Source of the DNA: Ramazzottius varieornatus
Lineage: Eukaryota > Animalia > Tardigrada
Direction: 5' to 3'
Length of the DNA stretch: 64,000 nucleotides
Assembly: GCA_001949185.1 (NCBI GenBank)
Contig: BDGG01000019.1
Span: 411,770 to 475,769 of the forward strand
In this document: one piece after another, positions 1,342-60,282 of the stretch
Layout: every line of letters starts with the position of its first letter
How positions within the stretch are numbered: the stretch's first letter is position 1
Program-made: the position numbers and the translations under genes
The notes under the pieces: model-generated
Database searches by the model: none
Seen by the model: only the letters and a program-made list of their open reading frames with translations
What the model was told of the DNA's origin: nothing

Positions 1342-4300
1342 TAGGCCCAAAGTCTCTTGACCATTGCATTTTGAGGCATACGCAATTTCCGTCTCGGTGA
1401 CTTTCGGAGAGCGTTTCGTTGTTTGAGGATTACTGTACGTTCATAGTGTACGCAGACTATAGATCCTATATTCTATAAGATTTGACCATGGTGGGATTTC
1501 TTACCGTGTTTCGAGCATCAGAAGCGTAAGAGGTAAAAGGAGTATCCTCAGTCGAGCGAACAGGAAAGTATGGGACAGTCGGGCTCCGATGAGTGTACAC
1601 GTCTACGGACAAAAGGGGAACAAGTAAAAGAGCCGGCAGCAGTTCCTGACGGTTGATAAAAAGTGAACGTTGAACTGATGGCGTTGTCGCAATATCTTCT
1701 TCCGTGACAGCAGAGAAAGAACTAGACATAAAATGCAAATAAAAATTCTGGGCATATGCTAAGTTGCGTTCACATATGCCAGGGACCTTCGCGCCTGCGA
1801 TATCCGAGCTGACAACAGAAGACTAAATTATAAAGGCGCCCAACCGGCAATATCTATACCCGTGCTTCTTCTCTGTAAATGCATGGACATACATACAACT
1901 TTTTCAATATACAGCCTGTCGGCAAAAGTTGTGTAACGATTGCGAAGGTTAATGCCCGCGCAGTTCTTCAACGCAGTATGTCTCTGGAAGAGACCTTCAC
2001 AGTGTACCAACTTAGGCAGTTAATCTGCAGAAAAGGCCTATCTACCGCTGCCAACTGTACGCAACACCAAAGCCTGTCTATGATGTACAGAAACGCTGAT
2101 GGCTGGGAATCACGTGCCCAAGCATTGCACGGCCTGTCGCAGGTTCAAACGTTGCTATGGGGATCTCGATGAGCTCCGCAAACACCGCCGCGCAACCATT
2201 GTGGAACCCGACGACAGTACGACACTTTGCTACTTCCGCGCCGCCATACCAGTGGGCCGAAACCTGCGCAAAAATTCCCAGGCCCAGGGGACACTACGGC
2301 TAGTGGACATCCAACTGTTCAGAAGAAGTATGAATCCGCCCTCTCCGTGATCTGATATTTTCTTTCAAGTGATTTTGACTTTAAGACTACTGAGGACTGG
2401 TAACTGCAATGGTAATCCTGATCAGCACGAGAGGAACCGTAAGTTTGGGAAAGCGAAGAACCGTTGTGCCACAGTAGCGGGTTCAATCAAGCGTTCAAAG
2501 CGTACTTGTGTACAGTACAGAGGTTATCTTGTCAGGATGGCTTCTTTTGGGTTTCCATGGAGCTCATAGGACAACGGTTGCATTTGCGGACATTCGACTC
2601 GTGCTTGTTGCATAAACCAAGGACGTACTTGCTCAGAACTTGCTTCCACTGTGCGCAACCTTGATGTCAGATTGGATTGCCAACAGGGAAAGGACCTCTA
2701 GACTGCTGAAAACCGTGCAACGTTCACTTCGTCGTACAGTGGCGCTCGTAGTATACACTGTGTAAATTTGTGACAGGCTCAGTACGTCAGACGCGATGAC
2801 AGTCAATTTTCAGAGTTTTGAGAAGTACCCTACGCTATTTTTGATACTAGAAAGAACCCTGGTTGCGGGTTATCTGCGGGTGAAAATAAACCAGCGGGCC
2901 TTGCCAGACCTAAAGGTGAGACATTTTATGGTCCGATCAGATGTCAAGTGTATTTTGGACGTTGAGTATAACATCAGTAGCAGGTGCATAAGGTGACCGA
3001 TAAGAAGAGACCGCGGGAAACCGTCAAGCGTAGCGCCAAAGTTGTACCGCCCTTTCCTTTGTTTTCAAATCTATGCGGAAGCACGACTGCTCTGTGCCGA
3101 AAGACAAAACAAGAAATAACCGGGATGTAATCGTGTTCTAGTGCAATCGGTCATGTACATTACAGCTAAAGAACAGGGTACAATGGCTCTTTTCCGACAA
3201 TTCTCCTTGTCTGTTCCCCAAAGTCCGCCGTTTTTCTGCGAATGTTCTACCGGTATTTTGCGGGCTTCTCGGCCAGTGGCGCACTGGCGCCCAAAAAAAG
3301 CTGTAAAAAAGCACTGGTATTGACAGTCCGAGCATTCCGCTTTTCAGCATTCCACTCGTAAGTGGCTTTACGCCACGAACCTCATGCTACAGTACGTCAA
3401 GTAGATGGCTACGAGGTAGAGTTCAGTCAACCACGCTGGACAAAGTCCGAATGCAGTAGCAGATGTCTGATGATGTCTGGTCGCTTATGGCTTCCAACGA
3501 TAGTTCATCATTCCCCGTGGTCGTTGAAGTATGAAAGTGAACATTTTTATGTAATCTATGCGTCGCTTTCGATAACGTTGCATGGTCCAACGCATACCTT
3601 GTGTGAGCTATCTTGAGCCTTGCATTTTCACCTCGTAAAGTGACGTGAATGTACCAGGAAATGATGAGCACCCGAGGTCGTTTCTGTGATGTTATCATCG
3701 GCAAACTACATCGAAGAAACTGAGATTTTGGCGCTGAAGGTCGACGGCATTCCTTTTGGGCACATACTCAGATTAATGACCGCGCTGAAGGAAGAACCAT
3801 ACAGGTTTCAGTACACTGTGTACTGAAAGTTTCTCCATCTGCTGGCTAAACATTCAGTATTTGCAAGTTCGGCAAATGGATTTGAGCTGATCGTTTTCCC
3901 AAGAGGCGCAAAACCCCAGCAAATACCAGCGGAAACATGCGCCATTCGCGCACACAAGTGCGAGCAGATCGTCTTCCAAGTGGCGCAAGCCTCGGTACAT
4001 TGGTTAGAAGTAAAGGCTTGCGCCACCTGGGAAACGCTTTGTTCGAGTTTGTTTGGCGCTTCCGTTTTCAGCTAATTCGATGTTAATTATTTCGTGCTGA
4101 ATTTACAATAGGAGCCATTGAAGATCGAAGGTTGCAGTTCGAGCTCTTGAGATACAGCGCGAAAGAGTAAAACTTTTTCGGTGAGGTGAATCACGATATT
4201 AAAATCCATCTTAATGATTTCACCCAGAGTAAGCCGGCTATTGAGACAAGTGTCAAATGAGTGGGGAACTTTTCTAGCCGAATATGACCTGCATATGTTT

Positions 4301-5649
4301 CAGGTGCTGACAGGGCTTCCGGCATGGGGGACCTGCGCATGCGCGGTTTCCGGGAATAATGCACTACATAATAGACGTCGAAGATTAAAGATGAGTTCAA
4401 CAGCTGAGGAAAAAAACGTCTGTGACGGAAATGTCAGTGGGATTATCGCGTCAGCGGGACCAGGTTCCCTCTTTTGAGCGTGACAGACCTTGACGCCGGT
4501 GCTTAACAGCTGGTCTTCAAGTCTCGCTCGGTACGAGTAAACCTCCGGCCAGAATGGCGTCAATTAATATTGCCGCCTCTCACAGCCCATCAGCTTCTAG
4601 CTCTTCTTCACAAATGGTCGTGACCAAACTCAGAAGATGATGAAATCCCGGCAGACAAGCTCGACTGGATCGTTTTTGTTTGGGGCGCACGCTGGCCGCT
4701 GATAAACCTGCGCCACTTCACAAAAACCGACCAACTTGACAAGATCGTTTATTCGAAGTGGCGTTTTACTCCATAAAGCAAGTCTTCTTGCCGAGAATAT
4801 ACTCGAATGATGATAAAGAACACTCTGCGCAACCAGGTAACATCGATCGTTTATCAACGATGTTGTTTCAAATAGGATTTTTTTTGTGATGCTGGAAAAC
4901 TGTTCTTCGCTGGATTTTCTTGCGCTATTTTGATGGCGTGTGGAGAATGCATGCTTGGCATTACCTCATTTGTTCCACAGTAATTACGGTCATGGTTGCG
5001 GCAGGCGCACAAACTGGTGAAAAACGTGTGAGAGCAGTGATGTGGAAGAGCAGCACTGCGTAGGAAGGAGTGTACGGGCGAGCGTTGACGCGGCATCCAT
5101 GGCAACGATCAACGCACTCTGTGCAGTCATGGTCAGTTACGTAAACGACGTTGAGAGAACAAGAGCGAAAGCAGGCAAGTACCCTAGCTAGCGACCTTGG
5201 CTGACTACCAGGAAGTACTTGGAGGCAGTACTGCAACGGTTATTGCATCGTTCTCGGTGTCAGAGCAGTTTTTGACGGCTTTGCAGCTTCCGTCATGGCA
5301 TGTCATACTGCATCAATCTCGCCGGCTGGGACGTTTTACCAGCGAAAGTAAATGCGGATTAGCGTACGACAACTTGACAAACAGCAACATCTGTAGTGCT
5401 GGAAATCACTCTCCTGAATCCAAGTGTAACCAAAACGCTTAGGAAATTTTGGAGGCATCCTTCCTGCTTCACGCTTTTAGATGAACGAAAATATTTCATA
5501 TTGCACACAGAGAAAATTCGACATTTAGAGCCAGTAAATCATTTTGAGAGGAACGTTTAAGCGGCTGTAGTTTTTCTCTTGAAAATATGTTTTTTTATGC
5601 CGCGTAATGTTGATAGTGTCTGGGTATGGAATGAATGTTAAAGAACCTA

Positions 5650-8600
5650 CTATAGACGATGTTCTTTTTCTCGGAAATGATTCTGCCCTTCGGAGCGGAC
5701 TTCTTCCTCTTCAGGGGACTCGATCACATCTTCCAAGCCAGGGCGTGGCACCGGCGACTGTGGCGCCAGTCCGTTGGTGTAAGCGTGGAGAATGCCGTTG
5801 CTGTTACCGTCCACAATGCTCTGCAAAAACACAGTATGAGATATGCCATCAGCGACATCAAATGCCGATTTCGCTCCAGCCAATTACCAATTAAAATTTA
5901 CTGAATGCAGTAAAAACAGAATTTCGCTCGTGCATGCATAGGACACGAAATTTTAGGCCTCTTGGGCATAATTTCAATTCCTCCTGATGTACCAACGTAG
6001 CTCACCTAATAACTGCAATTACTCACTCCCCCACTTGCAACGGCCAGATTTTCTACGTTATTCTCAATATAATCCTGCTCGCTTGCACTGCTTACGGTAA
6101 TATCTTGATAGCGTCGTTTTCAAATCTGTCAGGTGTTCCAAATGCCCCTAGTCTAGTCAACTTACCAGTTTGGTATGAGTGGAAGGCTTTTGAAACTTAT
6201 GCGAGTTGACAGCGTACAGCACGGCATCGTGGACCGTCACGAACACCTGGAACTCCTTGATGAAGTCATTCGCTCCACACTGATACAACGCATCCCGAAC
6301 CGGTTCTACAAAGCGCAAAGCCACATTGTGACGAGGTGGAATTTCAAAGCAATAATTTAGCCACAAAATGAAATAAAACACAAGTCTTACTGTTGGTGCA
6401 GGCCAGAAGTAACTCTACGCCAATACTCTCACATTCACTCTGAATACGCTTGAAGAAACCAACCGCCGTCACATCGACGAAACAAATCTCTGAGCAGTCG
6501 ACAATGATGTGTTTAATCGGCTGGTCCTGTCCTTCTCCCAGGATGCCTTCCTGTTCGAAGACCCGTCGTTGGGTGTTGTGCAGTTCCTCCATACTAATGG
6601 TGGGGGCGCCACGGTAGCGAGAGGAACCCTTGGTGCCGTCTTCGTCGTCGCTGTCGCCCAGTTCCAAGTTCAGGGCGTAAGCATACTTGTTCTGGTCGTC
6701 CGGGGCAACGTCGAAGGAGGCCGGGGTGATGAGTTCCTTGACGGGGTGTTCTTCGCGCCATTTAGCGATGAGGTTGTTGAGGTCGGCTAGTTGGTAGATC
6801 CGACCTTGGATGTAGGCGACGTTGGCAAAGTAGATGGGAGAATCAATTCGGACAATCTTCACACCAGGAACTTCAATTGCCTAAATGCAAAAAGGGGGAA
6901 GTTAAAACTTGAACGAGAAACAAGGTTAACTCACATATCAGCAAAAGAAGCGCGTTTATCATCGCTGTGCCACTTAGTGGCGCACGTATTCATTATTACT
7001 AGCTGTAAAAGTTCGTCACCCAACTTAGCGATCCGATTTTGTGTACCGATACAGGTGAAGCTATGGCAATCCTGCTGCGCTTACCGTTTTGTATACGTCG
7101 GTTCGGCGGTAAATATCCGTACCGGGAAGTCTGCCCAGTGCGCCAATCTTCGGCTTCTGTAGGCGCAACATGATGGTGATGATGGCCCAGCCAACGCCCA
7201 AACCCAGACCGATATCCACATCCAGGATTAGCACGCCCAAGAACACCACCAGGAAAATGGACTGCGCAACACACGGGGAAACATGATCTAGCTGCATTCC
7301 GTTCAATTCACATGTCGAGACAGTGAGGAAAGACATACCCAGTCGTATAAGGACAGCTTCCACAGCCTTCCCAACTGCAGCACCTGCGCCAGCAAGTGAA
7401 AGACAGAAACCATAACGATGGCTCCCAGCACGGGTTTCGGCAATGGCTCTAAGAACTTCCCCAGCGCAAGTAGGACTACCAAATACCAATTTGGAAATTA
7501 GTTCCTGTGATATTACCGTTTTGGTTTACCAAGATGTTGAAATGACGGACTAACCGATGAGGACGATACAACACTGGACGACACTGACGATCTGAGTCTT
7601 TCCACCAACGTCGTTCTGTAGGGAAAAGAAACCATTCCAGTGACGATCCACAATGCCGGCTGCCCGTTTCCGAAATCGTTGCGAGTGAAGGAGAAACCCA
7701 CCTGGACAGCACTACGAGCCAGCGAAGCACCCGATGGAAAGCACTGGAAGAACGAGCCAAAGATATTGCCGATGCCTTGAGCTTTGAACTCTTGGTTGGG
7801 ATCGATCCTGTAACCGTGCTTGGACGCGAACAACATACCTGAAACATATGCATTCATTAAACAATCGACTTTCGTTCAATGTTCTATTTTACAATGACAG
7901 TATGGAAAATTTCCCCATTTGGGACATCGACAAAAGAATCCACTCAGACTGCTTCCCCCAGCGGCGCAAGCTCTCAGCCAATACCACTGAAAACGCGCGC
8001 CGCTTGGGAAAGCAAACTCGGTAAAATCATTTTGTACGTGGCGCGCGATCTCAGTCAGTAGTACTGGTATAGTGCGTCACTTGAAACGACGATCTAGGCT
8101 GCTTCATTTTTCTTTTTTGTCAAAGTGTGCTGCTGAAAATTTTTCAGTTAAAACCTAGAAACCCCACCAAGAGTGACAGTAATAGCCAGTCCGACGATGG
8201 CGTTTGAGAACGTATCCCCGATGATGTCAGGCAAGACCCCGAAGTCCGGCAACGTCGCTGGTGGAAGACCCATGGGAATCTTTTTAAGGATGCTGACATG
8301 GTAGTTATTCTCCAGGTCCATCTCGTAGGACGCGAGAGTACCGAAAATCACCACCACCAGTTCGGCGGGCAGCGGCACACGCAACTTGCGCATAATGCGT
8401 TTATTATCGTTGATGCCGATTTTGACGATAAGGAGGAAGACCAGACAGATGATACCGACTACGAGGGTGGGAATGTGGGTCTGCTTGATTAGCGAGAAGA
8501 ACTGTATCCATGTCTTGATCAACTTGAAGGAGCCGTAAAACTCCGTCATGGGCAGCTTGAAAACGGACTTCAGTTGGGAAGAGAAGACGTGGAAAGCGGC

Positions 8601-11167
8601 ACCACAGGTAAATCTGCAAGCAAAGTAGGAAGATAACAACCATTATAAGTTCATAACCAACTACCCGCATAGCATCTCGTTCCACGCTCAATCAGCATGC
8701 TTTGACCATTACTTCCTTTACCAGGACCAAAATTTAGAGAAGGAAGCTTTTGCAGTTCTCGTCGATAGTTTTAGGAATCCATTTCGATCAGAATACGAAA
8801 ACAGTTCCGAGTAGGATATATGAATAGTTGTAGTGTGTAGGTGCTTGGAAAACAAACGCGACAGGACAGTTTTCCCGAGTGACGCACCTTTTAGCGTGTT
8901 TTCTCCGAGGTCACACTTTAGGACACGACCTCGGGAAACAAAAGAAAATTTTTTTGCAGTTTCATGCCAAAAATATATCTAACGAATCCGTTAGATATGT
9001 TTTTGGCTCATAAGTTTCGCAAGTTTCGTGAGACGGGCTTCTGCGACTTTCACACGAACTTGCACACATGAATACGCAAGACTCATTGTCTGAACATACC
9101 CTTGGACAAGTTGATCGGAAAAGTAGACGGACATGCCACCAGCACCGATGAGACCGAGGATCAGCTGCCAAATCCCCACGAAGAGAGCCGCCGTCGACCC
9201 AACTTGTATTGCACCCCATTCGCCCCTCGTGAAGGCGCTGCCGTTGATGATCTCATGAAACTCAGGGTTGGTGTACTTGGTTCCGTTGGGGAACGTCAGT
9301 TTCTCAGGGTAGGGGTTAGCGTTGAGGACCATGCGGCTCGTCATCATACTAGTGATGGAGAAGGTACCTGTATGCAGGACATTTTTCCATCATATTTTGC
9401 TGTTTTGCCAACTTCAAGAAACTGTGGCTATTCGGTTTTTCTTACCGATAGAACACTGCCGACTGGTTCCCATCAGGAAGTAAACGATAATTGGAAAAAA
9501 CTGTAAAAAGTACAACGTTGTCGTCAGTATTGGTTATGGGGCTCCGCTATTTTTTTCAGATCTCGCCTCTTTTGTATGAAATGGATATTTTTATCGTCGT
9601 GACTCGTTGTACGACCTGCGACTACCTTCTATCCTTGTAGTGCCCACCACATTCCCTTTTACTGGGTACACTGCTTTTCACAGTGCGCTTTGGCTAGATG
9701 CACCGCCTGGACACGGTCTTCAGAACGCAGTGTTTCTAAAGGTTGTCGGCGCACGGAAGCAGGCATTTTTTACGGAGTATAAGGACGTGTCGTATAATAG
9801 ACGACAAACTTTCCAGGACCCGGGAGTGAAGTGCCGAGCTAATCTTATTGTCCTTTGGACTTACTTCGTGTTCGCCATCTTTCATACGAAGAAGACCACC
9901 ACACGAAATCGAAGTCGTAGTGGCTCTCTGCTTCAACACTATCACGGTATAATCTCACTCTTTAGCTACCACTTTGAATATGAAATATTCTAGTCCGTAA
10001 AAAAATGACGGCTTCCGAAATCACTACGCTCTGAAAGTCGTATCCAAACCTTGCCCCTAGCCAAAAAGCAGTGCACTTGGCATTAACTGTAAGGGAACGT
10101 GACGGGCAGTGCACAGAGAAAAGACAGTGCCTCGAACCATTTCTCATTTAATTCAAAACTGGCAAGAAACAATTACCGAAGTGTACAAGCCGGTGACTGG
10201 AGGGCTACAGAAAACAATCAGGTTACTACCGAATTATGTTATCTGATTCTATGTACCACGCCGCAAAGCAATGTTCAAGGAACATACCATGCGGCCAAGA
10301 GAGCGTAAGCCATCCCTGAAACAGCAAACTTAGATTATGCTTCCTGTGCGATAGAATCTTCCTCTAGTTCGAACGTTTAAGAAGTGACGCACGCTTCCAG
10401 TCAATATTACCGAATACGTGCGCCACATGGGAAAACAATCTGGTCGAGTTTATTTGCCCCGCTCCCAGTCACACATTTAGCGTACCTTGAGGAACGTTGA
10501 GAACTCCGACGGTAATCCCTAAGAGGGTGACCTCAGTTAGTTTCAGTGGCACATAATGAGTTTCGGACTATGGCACCCTGAGACGGGAAATTTGATGAGA
10601 AAGGCTCACCGGCAATGAAGTCGGTGATGAGGTACCCGCGAATATTGTAGGTCCGAATCCAACCGATGAAGGGGATCCATCGGACCAGACCGCGGTAAAA
10701 GGAGCTTGCGTTACATCGCTTGCTTCTGGCCTTGTTGACTGTCCGACGTCCGTAGCTCTTGATGGATTCCCAAGGCGTCAATGGGGGACCCGGATCACAC
10801 AGCCCGTACGTCGCGTCGAAACTGGAACCATCAGAAATATCGTGGGAAAAACCGATTTTGGAATGTCACGGCTCAGTAAATCTTCGGTTTCTACTCGCAT
10901 TAAAAACTCAATGGAGATTCTGCTTTGAACGACGAAATGATCATAAAATATTTTTTCCAAATTGCTATATTTGACTTTTCCACGAAACACTGCGCTGATT
11001 CTTTTGACGTAATTGGTTCGAAAAATTCCTAAAGTGAACTACGTAATGTACCTGGTTTGATCGTAGACAGCTCGTGAAACGCGAAGCCTGGCCGGCCCAT
11101 TCTGCTTTCCCTCCACATGAAAGTCGCCCACAGAGTAAGTTACAGTAGGGTCACTTGCGAAAGGCAT
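5650..11167 (-). CDS. SLC26/SulP anion transporter paralog 1 (multi-exon, STAS domain)
   Basis: Spliced translation MPFASDPT...DFIAG|[10 protein letters not shown]|[19 protein letters not shown]|FFP...GTSRQCSIG...[10 protein letters not shown]...PIYFAN...[13 protein letters not shown]...[11 protein letters not shown]. Probable last exon 5820-5650 ends EHRL*. Canonical splice sites with matching phases. Confidence 0.93.
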
Positions 11168-50482: not shown

Positions 50483-51621
50483 ACTTGTACATAGTAGCCA
50501 GTGGGCTGCCGACCGGGGACCATGCGGAGCCACCCAAGAAAAAAAAATCGTGGGTTCGGCGTCCACTCCTGCACGAGAGCGTCTGTGTACCTAAGCGTAT
50601 GTACGGAGTCCACTAAATTGCATATTTGTGCGCATCACTTGTGCAACCGAACAATCAACCAATCAAACGAGCCGTTGATTGATTGATTAAGCCTTTTCAT
50701 CTTTTTGGAGTGTCATCGCTTGATTGTGTTGATTTCTCCGTTGAATATCGTTCGAATAATTACTTGATTGACCTTCATTACTTTTTTGATCGGATCCAAC
50801 CGGATTGATGAACCGGTCCAATCGGACTGATGATAGGGATGGCCGACTCGGTTCGGTCTTTCCTTGGATCGAGAAGCTGCAAAAGTCCGGCCCGGACTTA
50901 CCGGACGGCTCGACCCAACGAAAAATCGGGCCGAATCGATGGCCGACTGGCAGGCTTTCATGTCAGATGGGGGTCCGACATAGCAGTCTGACGCCTAGCC
51001 GCGTCATGTAAAAAACACTTTCTGTGATGTCTTATGTCCACCTTCGTGGCTGTCCAATTATCCCGTTTATCCGAGACTTCCGGCCAACTTTCTCAGGGCC
51101 ACAATCTTTCCCGCTGTCCACTCCCGATCCCGTCTCGTCCAACTTGGTGGTGCAATCGTTCTAGTGTCAGCAGGCCACCTGAAAACAGAAGCACTCGTTT
51201 ACAAGAAACCAGGGGCGCGTGGAGGTCCCGCGGATGGGTAAGGCTGATCAGCCTGTGAGGCTGGGAAAACCGTGGTCTTGAGCCTTGAGGCTGCCGAAAA
51301 CTGTGAAGGAGCCTCACGAGGCTGAAAAAACGAAAAAGCAGTATGGTACGCACAAAGAAGAAATCAGGCTAATTCTATATGGAGCGTCCTATAAAAGTAC
51401 CTTGGTTTCTATTTGTCAATGTCACAGGTGGTGGTTACGCAGTTTCACTGTAAGCTGAGCCTAATGAAGAGTTAGATGATCTTAGAAACGTAGAAAAGTA
51501 TAAAACATTAAGAGATAAGACAGAAAAATAGGTAAGACTGGAAACTAACAAAAGAAAGAAGAAAGAAGGAGACAGCAGAAGGAAAAGAAAAAGCAGGAGG
51601 GTCTCTGGCCCGCTGGACGCC

Positions 51622-51954
51622 TTACTTGTGGTTTTTAGCCACATTTCGGAGCTCCTCCATGCGAAGGATGTCCATATCGGACGCGTCCGAGCAGTGGGAC
51701 TTGCGTCGCTCCCGCCCAGACTTGCCACGACGGACACCGAACAACCAAACGAGTCCGCCCAAACCGAAAATCAACAAGGCCCCGATTACAATCAGAGCAA
51801 TCTGACCTGGCGTGAGTCCTCCGGGATCCTGTTGGGATGGGGTGGTGGCAGGAACCTCGGGGACAGGTGTGCTGTTGGTCGGCAGAGTGGTGGACGACCC
51901 GCTCGTGGTCATTGCGACCGTCGTCGTGGTGGCCAGGTCGACAAGTAAAAACAA
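51622..51954 (-). CDS. Small single-pass membrane protein with Thr/Ser/Pro-rich ectodomain (possible upstream signal exon ~52020-52170)
   Basis: TTTT..STTLPTNSTPVPEVPATTP, TM IALIVIGALLIFGLGGLVWLFGV, basic stop-transfer RRGK. Confidence 0.7.
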   Translation of the reverse strand: MFLLVDLATTTTVAMTTSGSSTTLPTNSTPVPEVPATTPSQQDPGGLTPGQIALIVIGALLIFGLGGLVWLFGVRRGKSGRERRKSHCSDASDMDILRMEELRNVAKNHK

Positions 51955-52591
51955 ATCGTTTAAGTTGTCGCGGTGTCAGGCATTATGATAACAAGCGGCG
52001 AAATACTTTCATTGCGTACTTTAACGCATGCAATGAAGGTACTTCGCCGCGTATTTGTAAGGGAAAGCTATGTGACACCCATCCAACTTCTTGGGTACTT
52101 TTGCTGCATCCAGCGAACCCAAGTACAAGCCCGCCCAGGCCAACTTGCCACCACCCATAAAGTTGAAGTGTTCTCGACCCGATCATCGTCCAGCTTCCAA
52201 CCTAGTTTTCCTTGATTCAACATACTGTTTGCCATCTCACCAGAAATTACTCGCTGGATAATCTGTCGGAATCGACATAGTACTAAAAAAAGGAGCGAGG
52301 CGAAGAATGCATCAACATTGACAGTTATTGCAACCGTTTCTGAAAATTATTTTTTCGGTTTCTTACAGACCTCCTGCGGTTTTGTTGTCGAGAAAAATTA
52401 GAACTAGGTCTGAGCTACAGAAAAGTGTGTCGAAAACATGAATCCGTCGTTCGGAACCGGAGCTACAAATTTGCCCGCAAAACGGTTTATCCGGCAAAGT
52501 GACGGAGTTCCCTAGTTTCAATTCATTTGCCGAGCTAGTTCGATGTCCCTACGGCCGTTCCTGATTTTTACTGACAACTCAGATACTCATA

Positions 52592-52916
52592 GGAGTGAAC
52601 ATCACAATTTATGCTGAATATGACTGAATATCCATCTCCGATTGGCCTGACCATCTATGAAGTTACCGAGAAAGTATTCCGGCTGCGAGAAAATACTCGG
52701 ATGGCGGGTTTTTCAAAAGTCATAGATGAGTTCAGCACCATTCACGCCACGAACTATCCGGTGAACTGTGCGCAGCTGCCAATCCGTCCATAACTTCTTG
52801 AAGTCCCGCCATCCGTGTATCTTCCCGCAGCCAGAGTACTTTCTCGATAACTGGATGGTCAGGCCCAGCGGAGATGGATATTCGGCCACATTCAGTGCGA
52901 TTGTGCTGATCACTCC
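52592..52916. repeat. Diverged inverted duplication of a coding-like fragment
   Basis: + arm LNMTEYPSPIGLTI..VTEKVFRLRENTRMAG and - arm LNVAEYPSPLGLTI..VIEKVLWLREDTRMAG, joined tail-to-tail near 52757. Confidence 0.85.
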
Positions 52917-53093
52917 ATCGAGCTGCAAAGAGATCTGCTCGTACTGAATGTGGCCAATTATCCATCGGCGCCGGGACTGACGACCATCGGGACCACCGCA
53001 AAACATTGAAAGCAGAATAGTTGACATATCTATACATCTCTAACGAGAGTGTATAGATCTGGCAAGTATTCTGGGTAAGAGATACAGGTAAGG

Positions 53094-53272
53094 CATCCAA
53101 AGGTGAGGACGAATACATAAGTACTTGAAGAGCACCTACCTTGCTGAAAGTATCCTTTGGGTCGAAGGATGGGAGGCATAGTGCCGCTGCTGTTTCCTAC
53201 GAAGAAACGAACATCTTTCCAGCAAGGTAGGTGCTTTTCAAGTACTTATGTATTCGTCCTTACCTGTGGATG
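53094..53272. mobile_element. Small MITE/foldback with ~55-bp TIRs
   Basis: AGGTGAGGACGAATACATAAGTACTTGAAGAGCACCTACCTTGCTG is a near-perfect reverse complement of 53220-53265. Confidence 0.75.
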
Positions 53273-54008
53273 GAAGTTTCGGGGGAAGACAAGTCGGAGC
53301 CGGCGATCTGCAGTAGGGACGGCGCACCGAAATATGCAAATTCAAAATGTAATTTTCGAAAACAACAACAAACCGAATAGCGAAGTGGGTGTCTACTGGA
53401 CTTCCGCTTCGCGTTATTGTTGCGGACTACTTTTTTGTTTCCCGCTTTTCCGCGACCACTGTGCACGTACTTTACCTAATTATGGGTCGGGACCAAATTA
53501 TGGGCCACCAGTTTTTGAGCCAGCTAGAAGGCTGATTGTTTTGGGTCTCACCTAGGACCTTACAGCTCCATAAGCTATGTGACTAAACTTCAGTGGAGTC
53601 AAGCATTGCACTGATTTCCGACATAAACAGGTTGCCATTAATTGCGTCCATGCCCGTGATTAGACAAAGTACGTGTACAGACTCACTGGTTCTTCATTGA
53701 TGGTGCATTTGATTCTCGTTAGCTCTCGGGAGTGGTTCGCGGCATATCCCTATGGTAGTTTGCACTTAACCCAGAGTCTTAGCCATCACGTAAAACTGTT
53801 TAAGCTAAGATTCGCGTACGATGGTCTGGAAGGTACCCCCGTAAGCTCTTATCTGCGTTTGCAATGCATCGATCTCATACTGGACTGCACAATAGTGTTG
53901 TTTATTGGTGTTATTACGGAGGTGAAAGTAGTAATGAAGATAATTCAACAACAGATCGAACTAAACAAGAGCATCCATCGTGAGAAGTATTAAGCACCAA
54001 AAGTCTAA

Positions 54009-56820
54009 TTAAACGATGTTATTGTTTAGCAAGCCAAGAGGCTCTTTCGACTCCATCGGAATGTTGTTCCGGCCAACGTTGCGAACTTCCCGTGCACTGC
54101 GGCGTCGTCGTTTGATGAGGAAAACCGTAACCAGGAAAAGGAGCCAAGTAGGAACTCTCGCTGATAGCGGTGTCAACGCCTAAAATGAATTAGTAACGCA
54201 GATGTGTCAAAGAACGATGAGTCGTGCTAGTTTCTCACTTTTAATCGAAAGTTCCTTGATGGCGCGTCGCGGATCTTTTATAACGCCAAGGTTTGGACCA
54301 TAGGTGACTGCAACCACGTACCAATGCCGGCCGTTGCCAATGCTGTCGGTGTTCAGAGCGTAGTACCTGTAGACAATAACACAAGCTTAGAAACGCTAGA
54401 GATAAAAACGTAGAACTTTGGATGACCTAGTTCCTCCGGTCTCTCGTAACAGCAGTGAGTACATTGGAAACATGTGATCAACGAAATGCCGCGTCCTTCC
54501 AACATTGACCAAGTTTTGAATAGCATAGGACATATTGATGTTCATCCGGTTGGCCGCAAGCCGGATGACCTCTGTGCTAGACAACCAGCGGGTACTGCGA
54601 GCCCCAAGTCCCATAAAGCTTCGCCCGTTAATAGCCACACTTCGCGTATTGACACCAGCCATCTCATCGTCAGAAACTTCCGCAAAAGGCAGTTCGGCAT
54701 TGTGTAGCAAGGCTACAGCCTCCGCGGCTACGAAGCCGCAAGCCGCTCCGTCCAACTGACCAGTGCGTATGGAATCCTGCACCGTAACCCCTGAAGCTCT
54801 CAACCAGTCACGTAGCTGACCAGGAACTGGATTATTTCCCCAAAAGTCAATGATTCTGGTTGTATGCGTTAGCTGAGGTAACTGGGCATCACCAAAGTTG
54901 GGAAAAAAAGGGAGTGTCGATGCAAGTTCTTGAATATCGGCTTGGGGAACAGGTCCTTCACCCACCTCCAAGGGGAGCTCATCTGCAGTTATTGGGTCGT
55001 CCCCATCTTCTGCGTTATCAAGCTGAGCACCGCTAGCGCCTGTTTGTTGCTCGTTGTCTAGCTCATCCAGAAATCTCTCACACTGTTGCTGCAGTTCTTT
55101 CCATTCTGGGTCCTGATCCATGGTTTCTTTGATGACAGTTTTTTTGACGAACCCGAAAGCCCGTTTGTCGTCAACAAAAATCTCATCTGCAGTTATTGGG
55201 TTACTGGTTAGCCATTCTCTTTGAAAAATTCTCCGCTGGCCCCCATTGCTCGTGCTGGGAAATGTGAAGCTTGTGGGTGGTACCCATGGACTCGATTATT
55301 TGCCGAACAACGGACCCTGGAATCGAAGCTAGTGGTACGGTTATCCATTCCCCAATGTCGGCTTCGGAAGGGCTCTCGGGCGCTGCCGACGTTGTGGTGG
55401 TCACGGTTGGGGGACGGTCACTTTGATCCATAACGTCACAAGAGGGATTCCTGTTAGTTGGCTGCGGTGGAAAGTGCGCGGGCAACAGCGGGCACGAGTT
55501 TTCCAAAGTATTCATTTCAACATCGTTGCAAGTGGTGGAAAAGCCTAACAAGAATCCGCATATTGAGTAATGAGAACATGTGTGATGCTTTAAATACCCT
55601 GTACGGTCATTGTGCGCATCTCCGTACCGGTGGTTGCTTCCGTTGTTGAAGAAGATGGCAGACCTTGAGGGGTAGATTTGTCCTCCAAGGCTTTTGATGT
55701 TGAAGACTCTGTTGTCTGGATGAAAAACTGCGACATTTTTTGTGGATGGTTCGGCGTTTGGTGGGAGGACCAACAGGCAGGGCTTGACTGTTGCGCTTCG
55801 CCGACGAGACGGATGAAAGAGCCATGTCGTAGCAGGACTCCGGCAAGGGTTGCCTATTCAGCCATGACCGTGCCTCGTTCAGTGGGGCCTCGGCAGAATA
55901 CGCAAGATTAGGAGAGCCTGGTGTTGGCACCCCATACTCAAACATGGTTTCTGAACCCTTGTCAAAGCGTGACATGGAAGAGTCGTACATCTTCCACGTT
56001 ACCTTGAAATGAACGCAGGCACCAATAATCCTTCGAGTCTTTAGTGCATCTGATCCAACTTTTAGTTACCTCGCCGAAGGTGCATACATCAGTGGCATTC
56101 TCGCATGGTCCACAAAAAAAAGGAACAAACTCGACGAGCTTTTCGTTGTGCAGGTCTGCTTCAGCGTCAAATGGGCGGTGTACAGTGCGATCACCCACAG
56201 GAAAAAAACTTAGCTCCTTTATACAGAGCCACAGTGCCCATAAAGTTTCGGGAAGGTAGAAGCTCTCGACAAGAGCCCACACTGTAGTTGAGCCCACCAG
56301 GACATTGCAAAATATCAGTCTTGTCGTATATACCGTGAAGTAGAAACGCATCTTGGTCATACGGGACCTGACTTGTTAGACCGTCTCCGGATGACAAAGG
56401 CAGCACGACCCCGGACTTGAGTGACTGACGATCCCAAATAACAATGTGGTGAGAGTCGAGATTATGGTGGATGGGTCCTGACAACTCCCGCTTGGTCCGT
56501 CCATCACATATCTGCTCTATCTCCACGTATCCTCCTATTGCATAAACTTTGCCGGAGTGAACAACTGCACTATTGCAATTTATTTCTGCAATCCGGTACG
56601 TACAACATTGTCTGTGAAAAACACTATCAAAAATTACAACAAAGGAAAAACCGGCACATGTTTAGGCAGCTAATGTACCTTGACAGAACTACGCCACAGA
56701 ATACTGCAAAATATTTTGTCCTCCCTTTATGTATACCAGAAGCTCATTTGATACGCACATAATTAACAACCGTAATAAGTTATGAATCCGTGAGGCACAG
56801 TTTAATCGCACTGAAGCATC
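54009..56820 (-). pseudogene. Frameshifted gene: Kelch-like repeats + Thr/Pro/acidic linker + papain-fold cysteine peptidase (+ possible TM tail)
   Basis: SAVVHSGKVYAIGGY (~56572-56527) and LPSRNFMGTVAL are Kelch-like. The open 55121-54427 segment has QLDGAACG and STRWLSSTEV. It splices (54426-54367) to NTDSIGNGRHWYVVAVTYGPNLGVIKDP. Confidence 0.6.
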
Positions 56821-57173
56821 CGGTCCTTCTTTTAATTTCGCCCGTCGGAGATTTGTAATCGACGAATTATTCTTAATCGTGAGCATTATGCGAATTTTAA
56901 AAGTCCCAGGTTCGTTATACATGTCAAACTGTCGAACTGGAGGTTGTCGACGTGACTAATAACGCTGACTTTCGATCTAAAGCATAGTAATGATAGTCAT
57001 TTGTTCAGAGTGTGATTTTTTTGCCCATATTTCATCCAGATACACCACAGTTGAGCAAAGCCGCATTTTCCGCGCATTATTTGCAGACTTCACTGCGTGC
57101 CTGTCTTAACATCTCAGCGAAGTTTTTGTATAGTTATCCTTCACGAGATTAAAGTTAACAGCCCACCTCATAC

Positions 57174-57341
57174 TGTACACGCGCATGGCCCAAATGTGAG
57201 CATGGACAAAACTGTGGGCCACGGAACGAAGACGGCACGGGCCAACCGGGGTTGACCAATCCATTAAATCAATCAAAGCAGCGCCGCTTTCGCTCCGTGG
57301 CCCACAGTTGTGTTCATGCCCAGAAGTAGGCGCGTGTACTG
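57174..57341. mobile_element. MITE (CAGTACACGCG terminus) nested in the hAT element
   Basis: Imperfect ~60-bp inverted arms including ACTGTGGGCCACGGA / TCCGTGGCCCACAGT. Confidence 0.7.
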
Positions 57342-58456
57342 GTAGTTACGTTCAAAAACCGGTTAGAATGGCTAACAGGTAAAAAAAATTTTCGGCCAGC
57401 CAGAGGCTGCTACTTTTGCTTCCATTTTCCCGGCCTGTCGAGGCTGAGAATTTGGACTTTGGGACAGGCTGAGCCTCATCAGCCTTATGGGTCAACGCGC
57501 CCCTGCAAGAAACTATGGCTTTTCACATCCGTCAACTAGCGAAGAGATTTTTCAAGTGAAAATTTACGAGTCCAAGATCTTGCGCGTGCATCGATCACCT
57601 ACATACAGGCGCACAGTATGCGCTCGATCACGTATGCGCCGGTTGAGAAAATGTACTCTGGCTACAGCGCGCGGCCCCAAACCAAGTACGAAATAGACTT
57701 CCGTCAGTACTGACGTCGGGACTTTTTTCTTGGGCATTGGCGCTAGCGGCTGCCCTCGAGAAGGAAAAGATGCCCGGCGGGGGCGCCACCAACATGAAAA
57801 TTGGCCCGCATACCGGCGGCTGTGCTGCTGAGTTATCGGCGTCAAAGCATCTCGATCTTGTCTGTAAGCCATTCCCTTTCGACCATCCTACCTTGATAAA
57901 GTCCAACAAATTATGGACCTGTAGGTTTGGAGACACAATCAATACAGCTTCCAAAATGTGCATGCACAATTCGAGAAGGTCCCATTCGTCGGTCAGTCGA
58001 TGCCCAGCTCTCGTCGAATAAATCTCAGTGAAAAAGCACTGTTTCGTAGGACGCGAAATTATGATCAGTGAAGGGTTGAAAATTTACCTTGACCTTCATT
58101 TTCCTGATGAGTTTCTCGTGCAATTCAGGAACGACACGGAAGTTAAGGTAATTTTCTTGGAAACGTTGCAAAGTCGCATTTTTCCTCATCTACCGTATAG
58201 AGTAAGGAGAAACGAAAAATTAAAACGTACTACTGCGAGCACAACCCGACCATACGCACGTGCTCGAAACATTCTACTACAAAACTCAAACACCTTGTTT
58301 CTTTCCCTCGAAGATCAACGGCTCTTACAGTATGTCCTTTCGTCGTCTTGTTTATGATAAGTAGTTTGAGCACACTTTCGAAGCAGAATTATGCCCAAAA
58401 AAGAGAAACAATTGGAAGCGGAGATACTAGCGCAGCTGCGAAGAGCAGTCAGGGAG

Positions 58457-60282
58457 CTAAAGGTGGAGAACCTGTGGAGCGGGAGGACTAGTTTGGGGGA
58501 GCCGTACCCATCTGAGTTGACCCTCGGGCAGAACACGGACAAGCGGCTGGATGCATTGCCCCATTGTATTCCACCACTCTTCCAGATCCCACTTAATGAT
58601 TGGCTTTCTGGTCCGTGATCGGGTCCGTTGATTATTTGGCAAAGTTTGCACCAGGATATCTGCGTTTGATGGAGGGCTGATGGCGGTGTGGCGTAGACTG
58701 GATTCAGTTTCCATTCGAAGTACTTCTAGTAGGCCGCGGAACTGGCTGATAAAAACAATAAATGTTCGGCCAGCGCTTTGGCGCTGGGGAAATCCCAGAT
58801 GTTGATGAAGGAATTGGGTGGAAATAATGCTGTGTAGTTTGCTCCGCCAAGTATTACTGGAACGGTGTCTTGCGCGTAGGCCCGGTGAACTTTTTCCGTC
58901 ACGTAATCCCGACATACACTGCAAAGAAGGAAAATCTGTCTTTGGATACGGTGATGATGATGATAATTATGATGATATTATCCAATGCTGAAGATACGAG
59001 GTAAACTTCACAATTCCGGCGGGGCCATTTTCCCATCATAATTCGGGCGGCGTGAAATGCTGATACGTTATCCACTCTGCTGTATTGATTGATCATCGTA
59101 CATCGGTTGATACAACTCTAGGCTTCTCAACATTGAGCAGACTCCTCTTCCTTCCGCCGCTGGCTCTTCAATTCTGTGACATCTTCCTATCTCTAGGCCT
59201 ATCACGAGATATACAAGAGTGTCTGTTCTGGCCCGGGGAACAAAACATAGGCGATTTGAAGCAGAAGGAGCTGAGATACAGACCGCCCGAATTATGATGG
59301 GAAAATTGGCCTGCCCGAATTGTGAAGTTTTCCTCGGAGCTACATCGTTTAAGGCTTACCTATTCTCAAAGGCAAGATAGAACTTGTACGTCGAAACGAG
59401 TCTGTCGCAGGCCGCTTCTTTTCTAAGAGAAGTTGGCTTACATTTTAGAGGTCCGCATCTTCCGTAGACGTCTATTGCTATGTATTCTCTTAGCTCCTCT
59501 AGGACAAGGTTCCTCCGACTAGGCGTAATGCAGTTTGACACAAAGGCCACCGCCAACTTTGTTTTCACTCTCAATGTTTCTTCGAAGGATGACCAGTCGG
59601 CCCACATGGGTGGTTTGTAGTTCTGGAAGTACGTATCGGCAACGATATCCGAGTCCAGACGGTATGTGAAAGTCAAGTTGAAGAAGCCGGGCGCCAACGA
59701 GGCCAGCGACATCTCCGTGTGACGAGGAGATTCCAAAAGATGAAACACGTAATACTGTTGCGGATCACGATATGCGGGAAGTTTTTCCCACTGCATATCC
59801 CGTACATGAAATATTACAGCCGAGCTTTGGTTAAGCATGGAGCGGTTACTGGTTATGACACAATTATTCACCGGGCAGCTCCTTAAACCGTGAACCGCTT
59901 CCTGATATATCTGCTGACGGCTGTTGAAATCGTGGTTGTAGTATTTCGTCCAGTACAAGATCAATGGCTGTCGCGGTAGGCTATTTGATTCAAACATGAG
60001 GTCGTCTGGCAGGACGTAGAAAGAACACAGGAAGATCCACATCAAAGGTAGTGCAACTATCCAGGGCCATAGCCCGCGCTTTGTCCTTTTACAAAGCCAA
60101 CGCATGGCTGTGAATGCAGCGGAGTTGCCACTGAAACCTGCCTGAGAAACTCCAGGAAAAACTCCAGCAACATGCCGTAAAATCCGAGGTGTGCCAGAGA
60201 ACGATGCGGCGATGTTCGAACAGAAAGAAATACTTCTCGGTTTAGTGCGGATTGGAAGACCATCTACCGTATCAGAGTCCAT
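58457..60282 (-). pseudogene. Alpha-1,3-fucosyltransferase (GT10), two exons, apparently disabled
   Basis: Type II TM, ILYWT, AVIFH, LESP, FNLTFTYRLDSD, FVSNC, IDVYGRCG, YKFYLAFEN|SVCRDYVTEK, PPNSFI and WCKLC. In-frame TAG at 58728-58726 and a frameshift before DLEEWW. Confidence 0.85.
58997..59336. mobile_element. Mariner-type MITE in fucosyltransferase intron
   Basis: ~54-bp imperfect TIRs starting CGAGG(T/A)AAACTTCACAATTC. TA on the left flank. Confidence 0.75.

Follow-up and report, generated by a model that had tools for sequence, protein, structure and literature searches.

The last 64 kb of contig C19 of the Ramazzottius varieornatus genome, the whole stretch analysed here and referred to as the window, contain a hAT transposon of 6,296 bp (positions 51210-57505) that is very probably a non-autonomous, internally deleted copy of a small hAT family of this tardigrade, standing to its parent as the Ds-del elements of maize stand to Ac. 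Of a long family member, the copy retains the two ends, the AGGCTG repeats beneath them and the greater part of the interior, with the transposase core deleted. A first-pass annotation had described the element as a Pack-hAT, a gene-carrying vehicle loaded with host-like cargo. Our comparison with other copies in the genome indicates that the interior is evidently made up of the remains of the family's own coding region and holds no captured host genes, because it is colinear with transposase-bearing copies minus two deletions. The window element is ordinary in this respect, and its only unusual feature is one inherited from the family, a putative OTU-like tail on the hAT transposase.

The boundaries of the element are firmly established (Table 1). 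The terminal inverted repeats (TIRs) of 11 bp, the perfect 8-bp target-site duplication (TSD) and the AGGCTG subterminal repeats reported in the first-pass annotation are all present, and its assignment of the element to hAT is borne out by the TSD, the TIR and the dimerisation domain of the long copies; TIRs of about 10-25 bp, typically starting with CAG or TAG, characterise this superfamily. The AGGCTG hexamers are concentrated next to the termini: 9 of the 34 sites in the window fall within 51241-51324 and 57404-57485, against an expectation of about 0.1; the whole 64 kb has 34, versus about 25 expected. By analogy with the subterminal hexamers of Ac (PMC3260210), they are presumed to be transposase-binding repeats. 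Both flanks of the element belong to one dispersed repeat (50690-51209 and 57506-57735), so the intron acceptor suggested earlier for the left flank sits in repeat DNA. In the copy of this repeat on contig C3 (L051), the left flank is joined to the right flank across a single CAAGAAAT. This locus is an empty site, paralogous rather than the allelic one envisaged at first, and because it carries the 8-mer once, it fixes the element boundaries and proves the 8-bp duplication. The flanking repeat has at least 14 copies of 68-90% identity, and those on C4 and C13 hold an additional 510-550 bp near the same point.

Both termini of the element recur elsewhere in the genome, the exact 14-mer terminus occurring 22 times versus once for the reversed control. 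The family consists of about a dozen elements, with substitution distances of 1.7-3.4% among copies and an identical CAGGGGCGCGT TIR in all complete ones. As the first-pass annotation had anticipated for a mobile element, copies with the same TIRs and different 8-bp TSDs exist (on C10, C1, C7, C2 and C21), and the other members represent differing internal deletions of the same parent. The family also has MITE-like (miniature inverted-repeat transposable element) relatives of 450 bp and about 80% identity. Two short contigs (C73:1281-1664 and C56:2285-2668 of G000) show the same left end of the family and the same flank in opposite orientation, and are probably one locus assembled twice. The copy on C8 includes about 3.2 kb that do not align to the C10 copy; this segment could be either an insertion nested in the copy or genuinely foreign filler, making the C8 copy a better place than the window copy to seek Pack-type capture. 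DNA transposons, hAT included, are abundant in R. varieornatus, with complex non-autonomous forms (PMC11071193), and the hAT dimerisation domain (PF05699) was matched at least 143 times across the 55.8-Mb genome, a heavy and diverse hAT load for a small genome.

The relationship of the window copy to its parent was resolved by alignment (BLAST) to the longest copy, on C10. Specifically, element positions 1-1387 correspond to positions 1-1410 of the C10 copy (94.6% identity), 1382-3976 to 2312-4905 (95.1%) and 3988-6296 to 7458-9791 (96.0%). Given this colinearity, the window copy is a long element from which 0.9 kb and 2.55 kb are missing. Outside the window copy, nothing in the genome other than family copies and old dispersed repeats matches the interior. 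The 2.55-kb segment, present only in the C10 and C1 copies apart from its last 387 bp, which also occur in the C7 copy, includes PF05699; the 0.9-kb segment is non-coding interior. An insertion in the long copies was considered for the 0.9-kb difference and rejected, an old dispersed repeat being unbroken across the point there; because this repeat is continuous in the long copies, the difference is a deletion in the window copy. At the second junction, the filler and the microhomologies on either side of it together reproduce, without a mismatch, the 20-mer at 54978-54997, which lies 204 bp away; templated filler of this kind is seen in Ds-type derivatives of Ac and would point to repair synthesis that was interrupted and switched template. 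The intact ends and TSD suggest that the window copy was moved, or would be movable, in trans by the transposase of a full-length copy.

The same observations bear on an alternative course of events, in which a full-length 9.8-kb copy inserted at this site and both deletions arose later in place by double-strand-break repair, so that the 6.3-kb form never moved. We consider this a real possibility, if not the favoured one. Neither deletion junction is common to any other family copy, break repair in general leaves templated filler and microhomology, and in animals most rearranged TIR elements found as single copies come about without transposition (PMC8277862). Conversely, other family members combine the same kind of deletion with intact ends and perfect TSDs, as is usual for still-mobile derivatives, and the evidence fits both routes alike. 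The TSD itself calls for no special history. The first-pass annotation had taken its intactness beside decayed cargo as a sign that the cargo was already old at the last move; at about 1.5% change per copy, however, the 16 TSD bases would stay unchanged about 80% of the time, so an intact TSD beside broken ORFs (open reading frames) is unremarkable.

Long members of the family appear to encode, on one strand and in order, an upstream ORF, a short ATG-started ORF, the transposase and a fused C-terminal Cys/His tail, the transposase probably comprising a TTF-type-like zinc finger, DUF4371, an RNase-H-like core and the hAT dimerisation domain. The protein sequences used here were the database gene models P0001 and P0003 together with single ORFs. 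On C1, gene model RvY_01267 (P0001, 888 aa) contains both DUF4371 (PF14291) and PF05699; the C10 copy also has PF05699, and full-length hAT relatives of 739-863 aa align along both copies, which supply the transposase-bearing hAT with the same TIRs that the first-pass annotation had proposed to look for. A sequence search of the PDB with the hAT ORF returned nothing useful. Within the window copy, no full-length hAT transposase aligns and no ORF matches a transposase family in Pfam, the larger ORFs giving no Pfam match of any kind, in agreement with the initial observation that no transposase is recognisable. Of its 5' part there is left a remnant with a zinc-finger-like motif, which we take, from the motif, to be of the TTF type, and a frameshift in this remnant (55197-55773) prevents an intact fusion with the tail domain. 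Like DUF4371-type (ZMYM1-like) hAT transposases, the long copies carry PF14291 and PF05699; unlike them, the family also has the upstream ORF and about 260 aa of extra C-terminal sequence. The resemblance to Ds-del elements of Ac lies in the 11-bp TIRs, the 8-bp TSD, the subterminal hexamers and the internal deletion of the transposase gene with ends kept (PMC3260210). The differences are the tardigrade host, a parent about twice the length of Ac with extra ORFs and domains, and a mobilisation in trans that is only presumed for the window copy.

The annotated gene inside the element, RvY_18592, is, on these alignments, the C-terminal Cys/His domain of the transposase (hereafter the tail domain) plus a hydrophobic tail, cut off from the transposase. 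In the C1 copy, one 340-aa ORF spans the hAT domain and runs into the first 75 residues of RvY_18592. The same fusion occurs beyond this genome: metagenome contig L050 (645-2480), in which the TIR of the family was sought and not found, has a single 612-aa ORF, free of interruptions, that covers both the hAT C-terminus and the tail domain, and metagenome contig L049 holds them in one frame; both contigs come from other organisms. A paralog on C10 (at 85 kb), 27% identical to the tail, lies directly downstream of DUF4371 and zinc-finger remnants. Across samples, the tail domain is 40-50% identical. Every sequence long enough to cover them has the Cys of the DGAACGF motif (Cys128) and the His of the HW-VVAV motif (His246), even paralogs of 21-23% identity; the Cys lies outside the truncated L048 ORF and the His outside the truncated L037 ORF. 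Closer relatives also have a Gln six residues ahead of the conserved Cys. An early AlphaFold model of RvY_18592 built from 3 sequences was not usable (predicted local distance difference test, pLDDT, 41), and the ESM Atlas model of the tail was poor, its feature matches to C39, C58 and IpaJ peptidases (<0.9) serving as leads only. By contrast, a model of the tail relative P0155 from seven sequences reached pLDDT 76 and a predicted template modelling score of 0.74, and exhaustive structural alignment of this model gave as its best PDB match the OTU deubiquitinase 7bu0_B (Z 7.1, a middling score; root-mean-square deviation 3.5; 122 residues). At least 12 further OTU or OTU-like entries stood among the top 50, many at Z 3.9-4.8, alongside staphopain and C39 peptidases. 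The tail is probably a divergent OTU-like papain-fold domain and may be a deubiquitinase-like peptidase. In R. varieornatus, it is followed by a hydrophobic stretch resembling a membrane anchor. The first-pass annotation had proposed an intron-containing Kelch/peptidase gene inside the element; the two-exon gene stands and a papain fold is plausible, whereas the domain belongs to the transposase and Kelch is unsupported. The current description of RvY_18592 as a 'hypothetical protein' should read transposon fragment.

Several observations weigh against this overall account. Best Z scores of 7-8 are common for models without a clear Foldseek match, a Z near 7 can be a product of chance, and Foldseek itself found no meaningful match to the tail model in the PDB. 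The Pfam OTU family (PF02338) gave no match at E<=10 for P0003, P0154 or the paralog. The long copies show several reading frames, a state that fits short introns, and no copy is proven intact. Finally, deletions before or after landing at this site both fit the window copy.

C-terminal peptidase domains have been described in transposases of other superfamilies, namely OTU or Ulp1 in Ginger1, Ulp1 in MULE and CACTA elements and OTU in animal Helitrons (PMC2836005, PMC2528002). The present family resembles them in having a putative papain-fold Cys/His domain fused to the transposase or placed just after it, with OTU deubiquitinases as its nearest structures. It differs in that the carrier is a DUF4371-type hAT, the tail lacks a Pfam OTU match and a hydrophobic tail follows in R. 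varieornatus. A limited literature search found no report of such a peptidase domain on a hAT transposase. With this tail domain, hAT would join the superfamilies in which transposases bear a papain-fold (OTU-like) cysteine-peptidase domain, a modestly new feature that would support the old idea that ubiquitin-like pathways matter in cut-and-paste transposition.

Upstream of the transposase, the window copy contains a decayed ORF (56061-56661), the counterpart of a 213-aa ORF of the long copies. It is this segment that had been read as Kelch. We rejected that reading, as Kelch_1 aligns along only about 20 residues (half a repeat), its 16.3 bits fall short of the Pfam cut-off of 20.1, and the distant host paralog RvY_08511 lacks the Kelch GG motif; Atlas feature matches to Kelch and RAG2 were 0.90-0.91, with low recognition. 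Sister hAT remnants likewise have the upstream ORF followed by the short ATG-started ORF, and because sister families keep this order, the upstream ORF is part of the coding set of the lineage. The remnants of divergent sister hAT families (L047, G000:C10:85300-88700; L048, G000:C13:1294846-1295762; L055; L056) follow the order upstream ORF, short ORF, zinc finger, DUF4371 and OTU-like tail, and in L048 an internal deletion brings the upstream ORF almost directly against the tail.

An ancient capture at the level of the lineage, involving the upstream ORF, the OTU-type domain or both and kept ever after by all members, autonomous copies among them, is possible but doubtful, and would be compatible with an internally deleted copy in the window. 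In its favour, the upstream ORF is about 30% identical (E 2e-14) to residues 114-323 of RvY_08511, with a common domain of about 190 aa, and OTU and Ulp1 domains have repeatedly been joined to Ginger1, MULE, CACTA and Helitron proteins (PMC2836005, PMC2528002). RvY_08511 (L054, G000:C4:483486-485733), present as a single copy, encodes a signal peptide and a Q-rich region and goes under the name 'CUB domain-containing' in UniRef. However, RvY_08511 could itself derive from a transposon, and the gene order kept in sister families together with the fusion kept across samples speaks for proteins integral to the transposon. Homologue searches for the tail domain returned only four relatives and no cellular homologue; it matched no Pfam family of any kind at E<=10, and a PDB profile search gave nothing relevant.

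Combining these elements, one could envision a hAT lineage that made an OTU-like deubiquitinase tail permanent and carries an upstream ORF related to a secreted host protein, with the deletion in the window copy freeing RvY_18592 as a stand-alone gene. We regard this combined scenario as unlikely; if true, the tail would act in transposition or handle host ubiquitin-dependent DNA-damage or silencing responses. That RvY_18592 has been domesticated, as an OTU-like protein freed by the deletion and kept by the host, is very improbable. Among four copies, the window copy has the sole uninterrupted tail exon 1, and the gene has a clean GT-AG intron. Nevertheless, the ratio of non-synonymous to synonymous differences (pN/pS) versus the other copies is 0.5-1.7 on tiny counts of 12-25 differences and gives no sign of constraint, the window copy is only about 2-3% diverged, and its hydrophobic tail is shortened.

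The least tenable explanation is the original one, a transposase-less hAT shell that captured host genes as cargo: the window copy has no transposase match and bears the annotated non-transposase gene RvY_18592, and Pack-TIRs, mostly hAT-associated, are known in animals (PMC8277862), but the whole interior is colinear with transposase-bearing copies, the element itself is the source of the sole filler, of 11 nt, and searches for parental genes with the interior, RvY_18592 and the 107-aa ORF brought up nothing beyond family copies, old dispersed repeats and distant paralogs (26-29%) linked to hAT remnants. Pack-hATs as such have already been described in animals, where 208 of 370 Pack-TIRs are hAT-associated (PMC8277862). 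The window element is like Pack-TIRs and Pack-MULEs in being a transposase-less TIR element that contains ORFs, and unlike them in that its interior is the family's own and genome searches found no parental host sequence. Our results serve as a corrective, in that a seeming animal Pack-hAT with host genes proves to be a routine deletion derivative. They also provide a clean, bounded example, with empty site, TSDs and templated filler, of the origin of a non-autonomous hAT in a tardigrade genome rich in DNA transposons.

Table 1. Features of the hAT element in the window and copies of its family elsewhere in the genome.
Feature	Window position	Length	Strand	Remarks
Left TSD CAAGAAAC	51202-51209			basis: sequence and the single CAAGAAAT at the empty-site paralog L051
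Left TIR CAGGGGCGCGT	51210-51220	11 bp	+	14 nt if one mismatch is allowed
Left subterminal region	51241-51324			5 AGGCTG/CAGCCT hexamers
107-aa ORF (earlier 'membrane-protein gene')	51837-52160		+	open by chance
Old dispersed repeat, fragment	52134-52593	full repeat ~700 bp		ancestral interior of the family, cut by deletion 1; >20 loci, ~70% identity
Deletion junction 1	52591-52596			~0.9 kb gone (C10 copy 1411-2311); AGG microhomology
Internal inverted duplications	52592-52981			also in long copies
Nested MITE-like inverted repeat	53459-53680			dispersed copies on C13, C1, C6 and C8; also inside the C10, C1 and C7 copies
RvY_18592 (P0003)	54012-55121	338 aa	-	exons 54423-55121 and 54012-54368; GT-AG intron of ~54 bp
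Deletion junction 2	55186-55196			2.55 kb gone (C10 copy 4906-7457, transposase core); 11-nt filler
Transposase 5' remnant	55197-55773		-	N-terminal low-complexity region and first half of TTF-type-like zinc finger
Counterpart of the ATG-started ORF preceding the transposase in the C1 copy	55607-55990	133 aa (C1 copy)	-	conserved in sister families
Decayed upstream ORF (earlier 'Kelch' part)	56061-56661		-	broken by a TGA and a frameshift
Right subterminal region	57404-57485			4 AGGCTG/CAGCCT hexamers
Right TIR, reverse complement of CAGGGGCGCGT	57495-57505	11 bp	-	
Right TSD CAAGAAAC	57506-57513			perfect 8-bp match to the left TSD
C10 copy		9,791 bp		perfect 8-bp TSD, unlike the window's
C1 copy		9,496 bp		perfect 8-bp TSD, unlike the window's
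C7 copy		7,285 bp		perfect 8-bp TSD, unlike the window's
C19 copy (window)		6,296 bp		TSD CAAGAAAC
C8 copy (L040, G000:C8:1311230-1316773)		5,544 bp		TSD 7/8 bases
C21 copy		1,921 bp		perfect 8-bp TSD, unlike the window's
C16 copy		1,842 bp		flanking 8-mers shifted by one base, no clean repeat
C2 copy		942 bp		perfect 8-bp TSD, unlike the window's

The remaining internal features had been interpreted as further cargo or as nested elements. The small membrane-protein gene proposed at 51837-52160 was rejected: the region occurs only in family copies, and all seven others have 1-2 stop codons in it. The inverted internal duplication reported is present, at about 52592-52981. As to the two MITEs, the inverted repeat at 53459-53680 has dispersed copies and, by its distribution, evidently entered the family before the family spread, whereas for the hairpin at 53094-53272 dispersed copies were sought in the genome and none found. 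Outside the element, the nearest recognisable gene is a GT10 alpha-1,3-fucosyltransferase gene on the minus strand (58729-60282; Pfam Glyco_tran_10_N and Glyco_transf_10), with about 1.2 kb between the right end of the transposon and the last recognisable exon of the gene.

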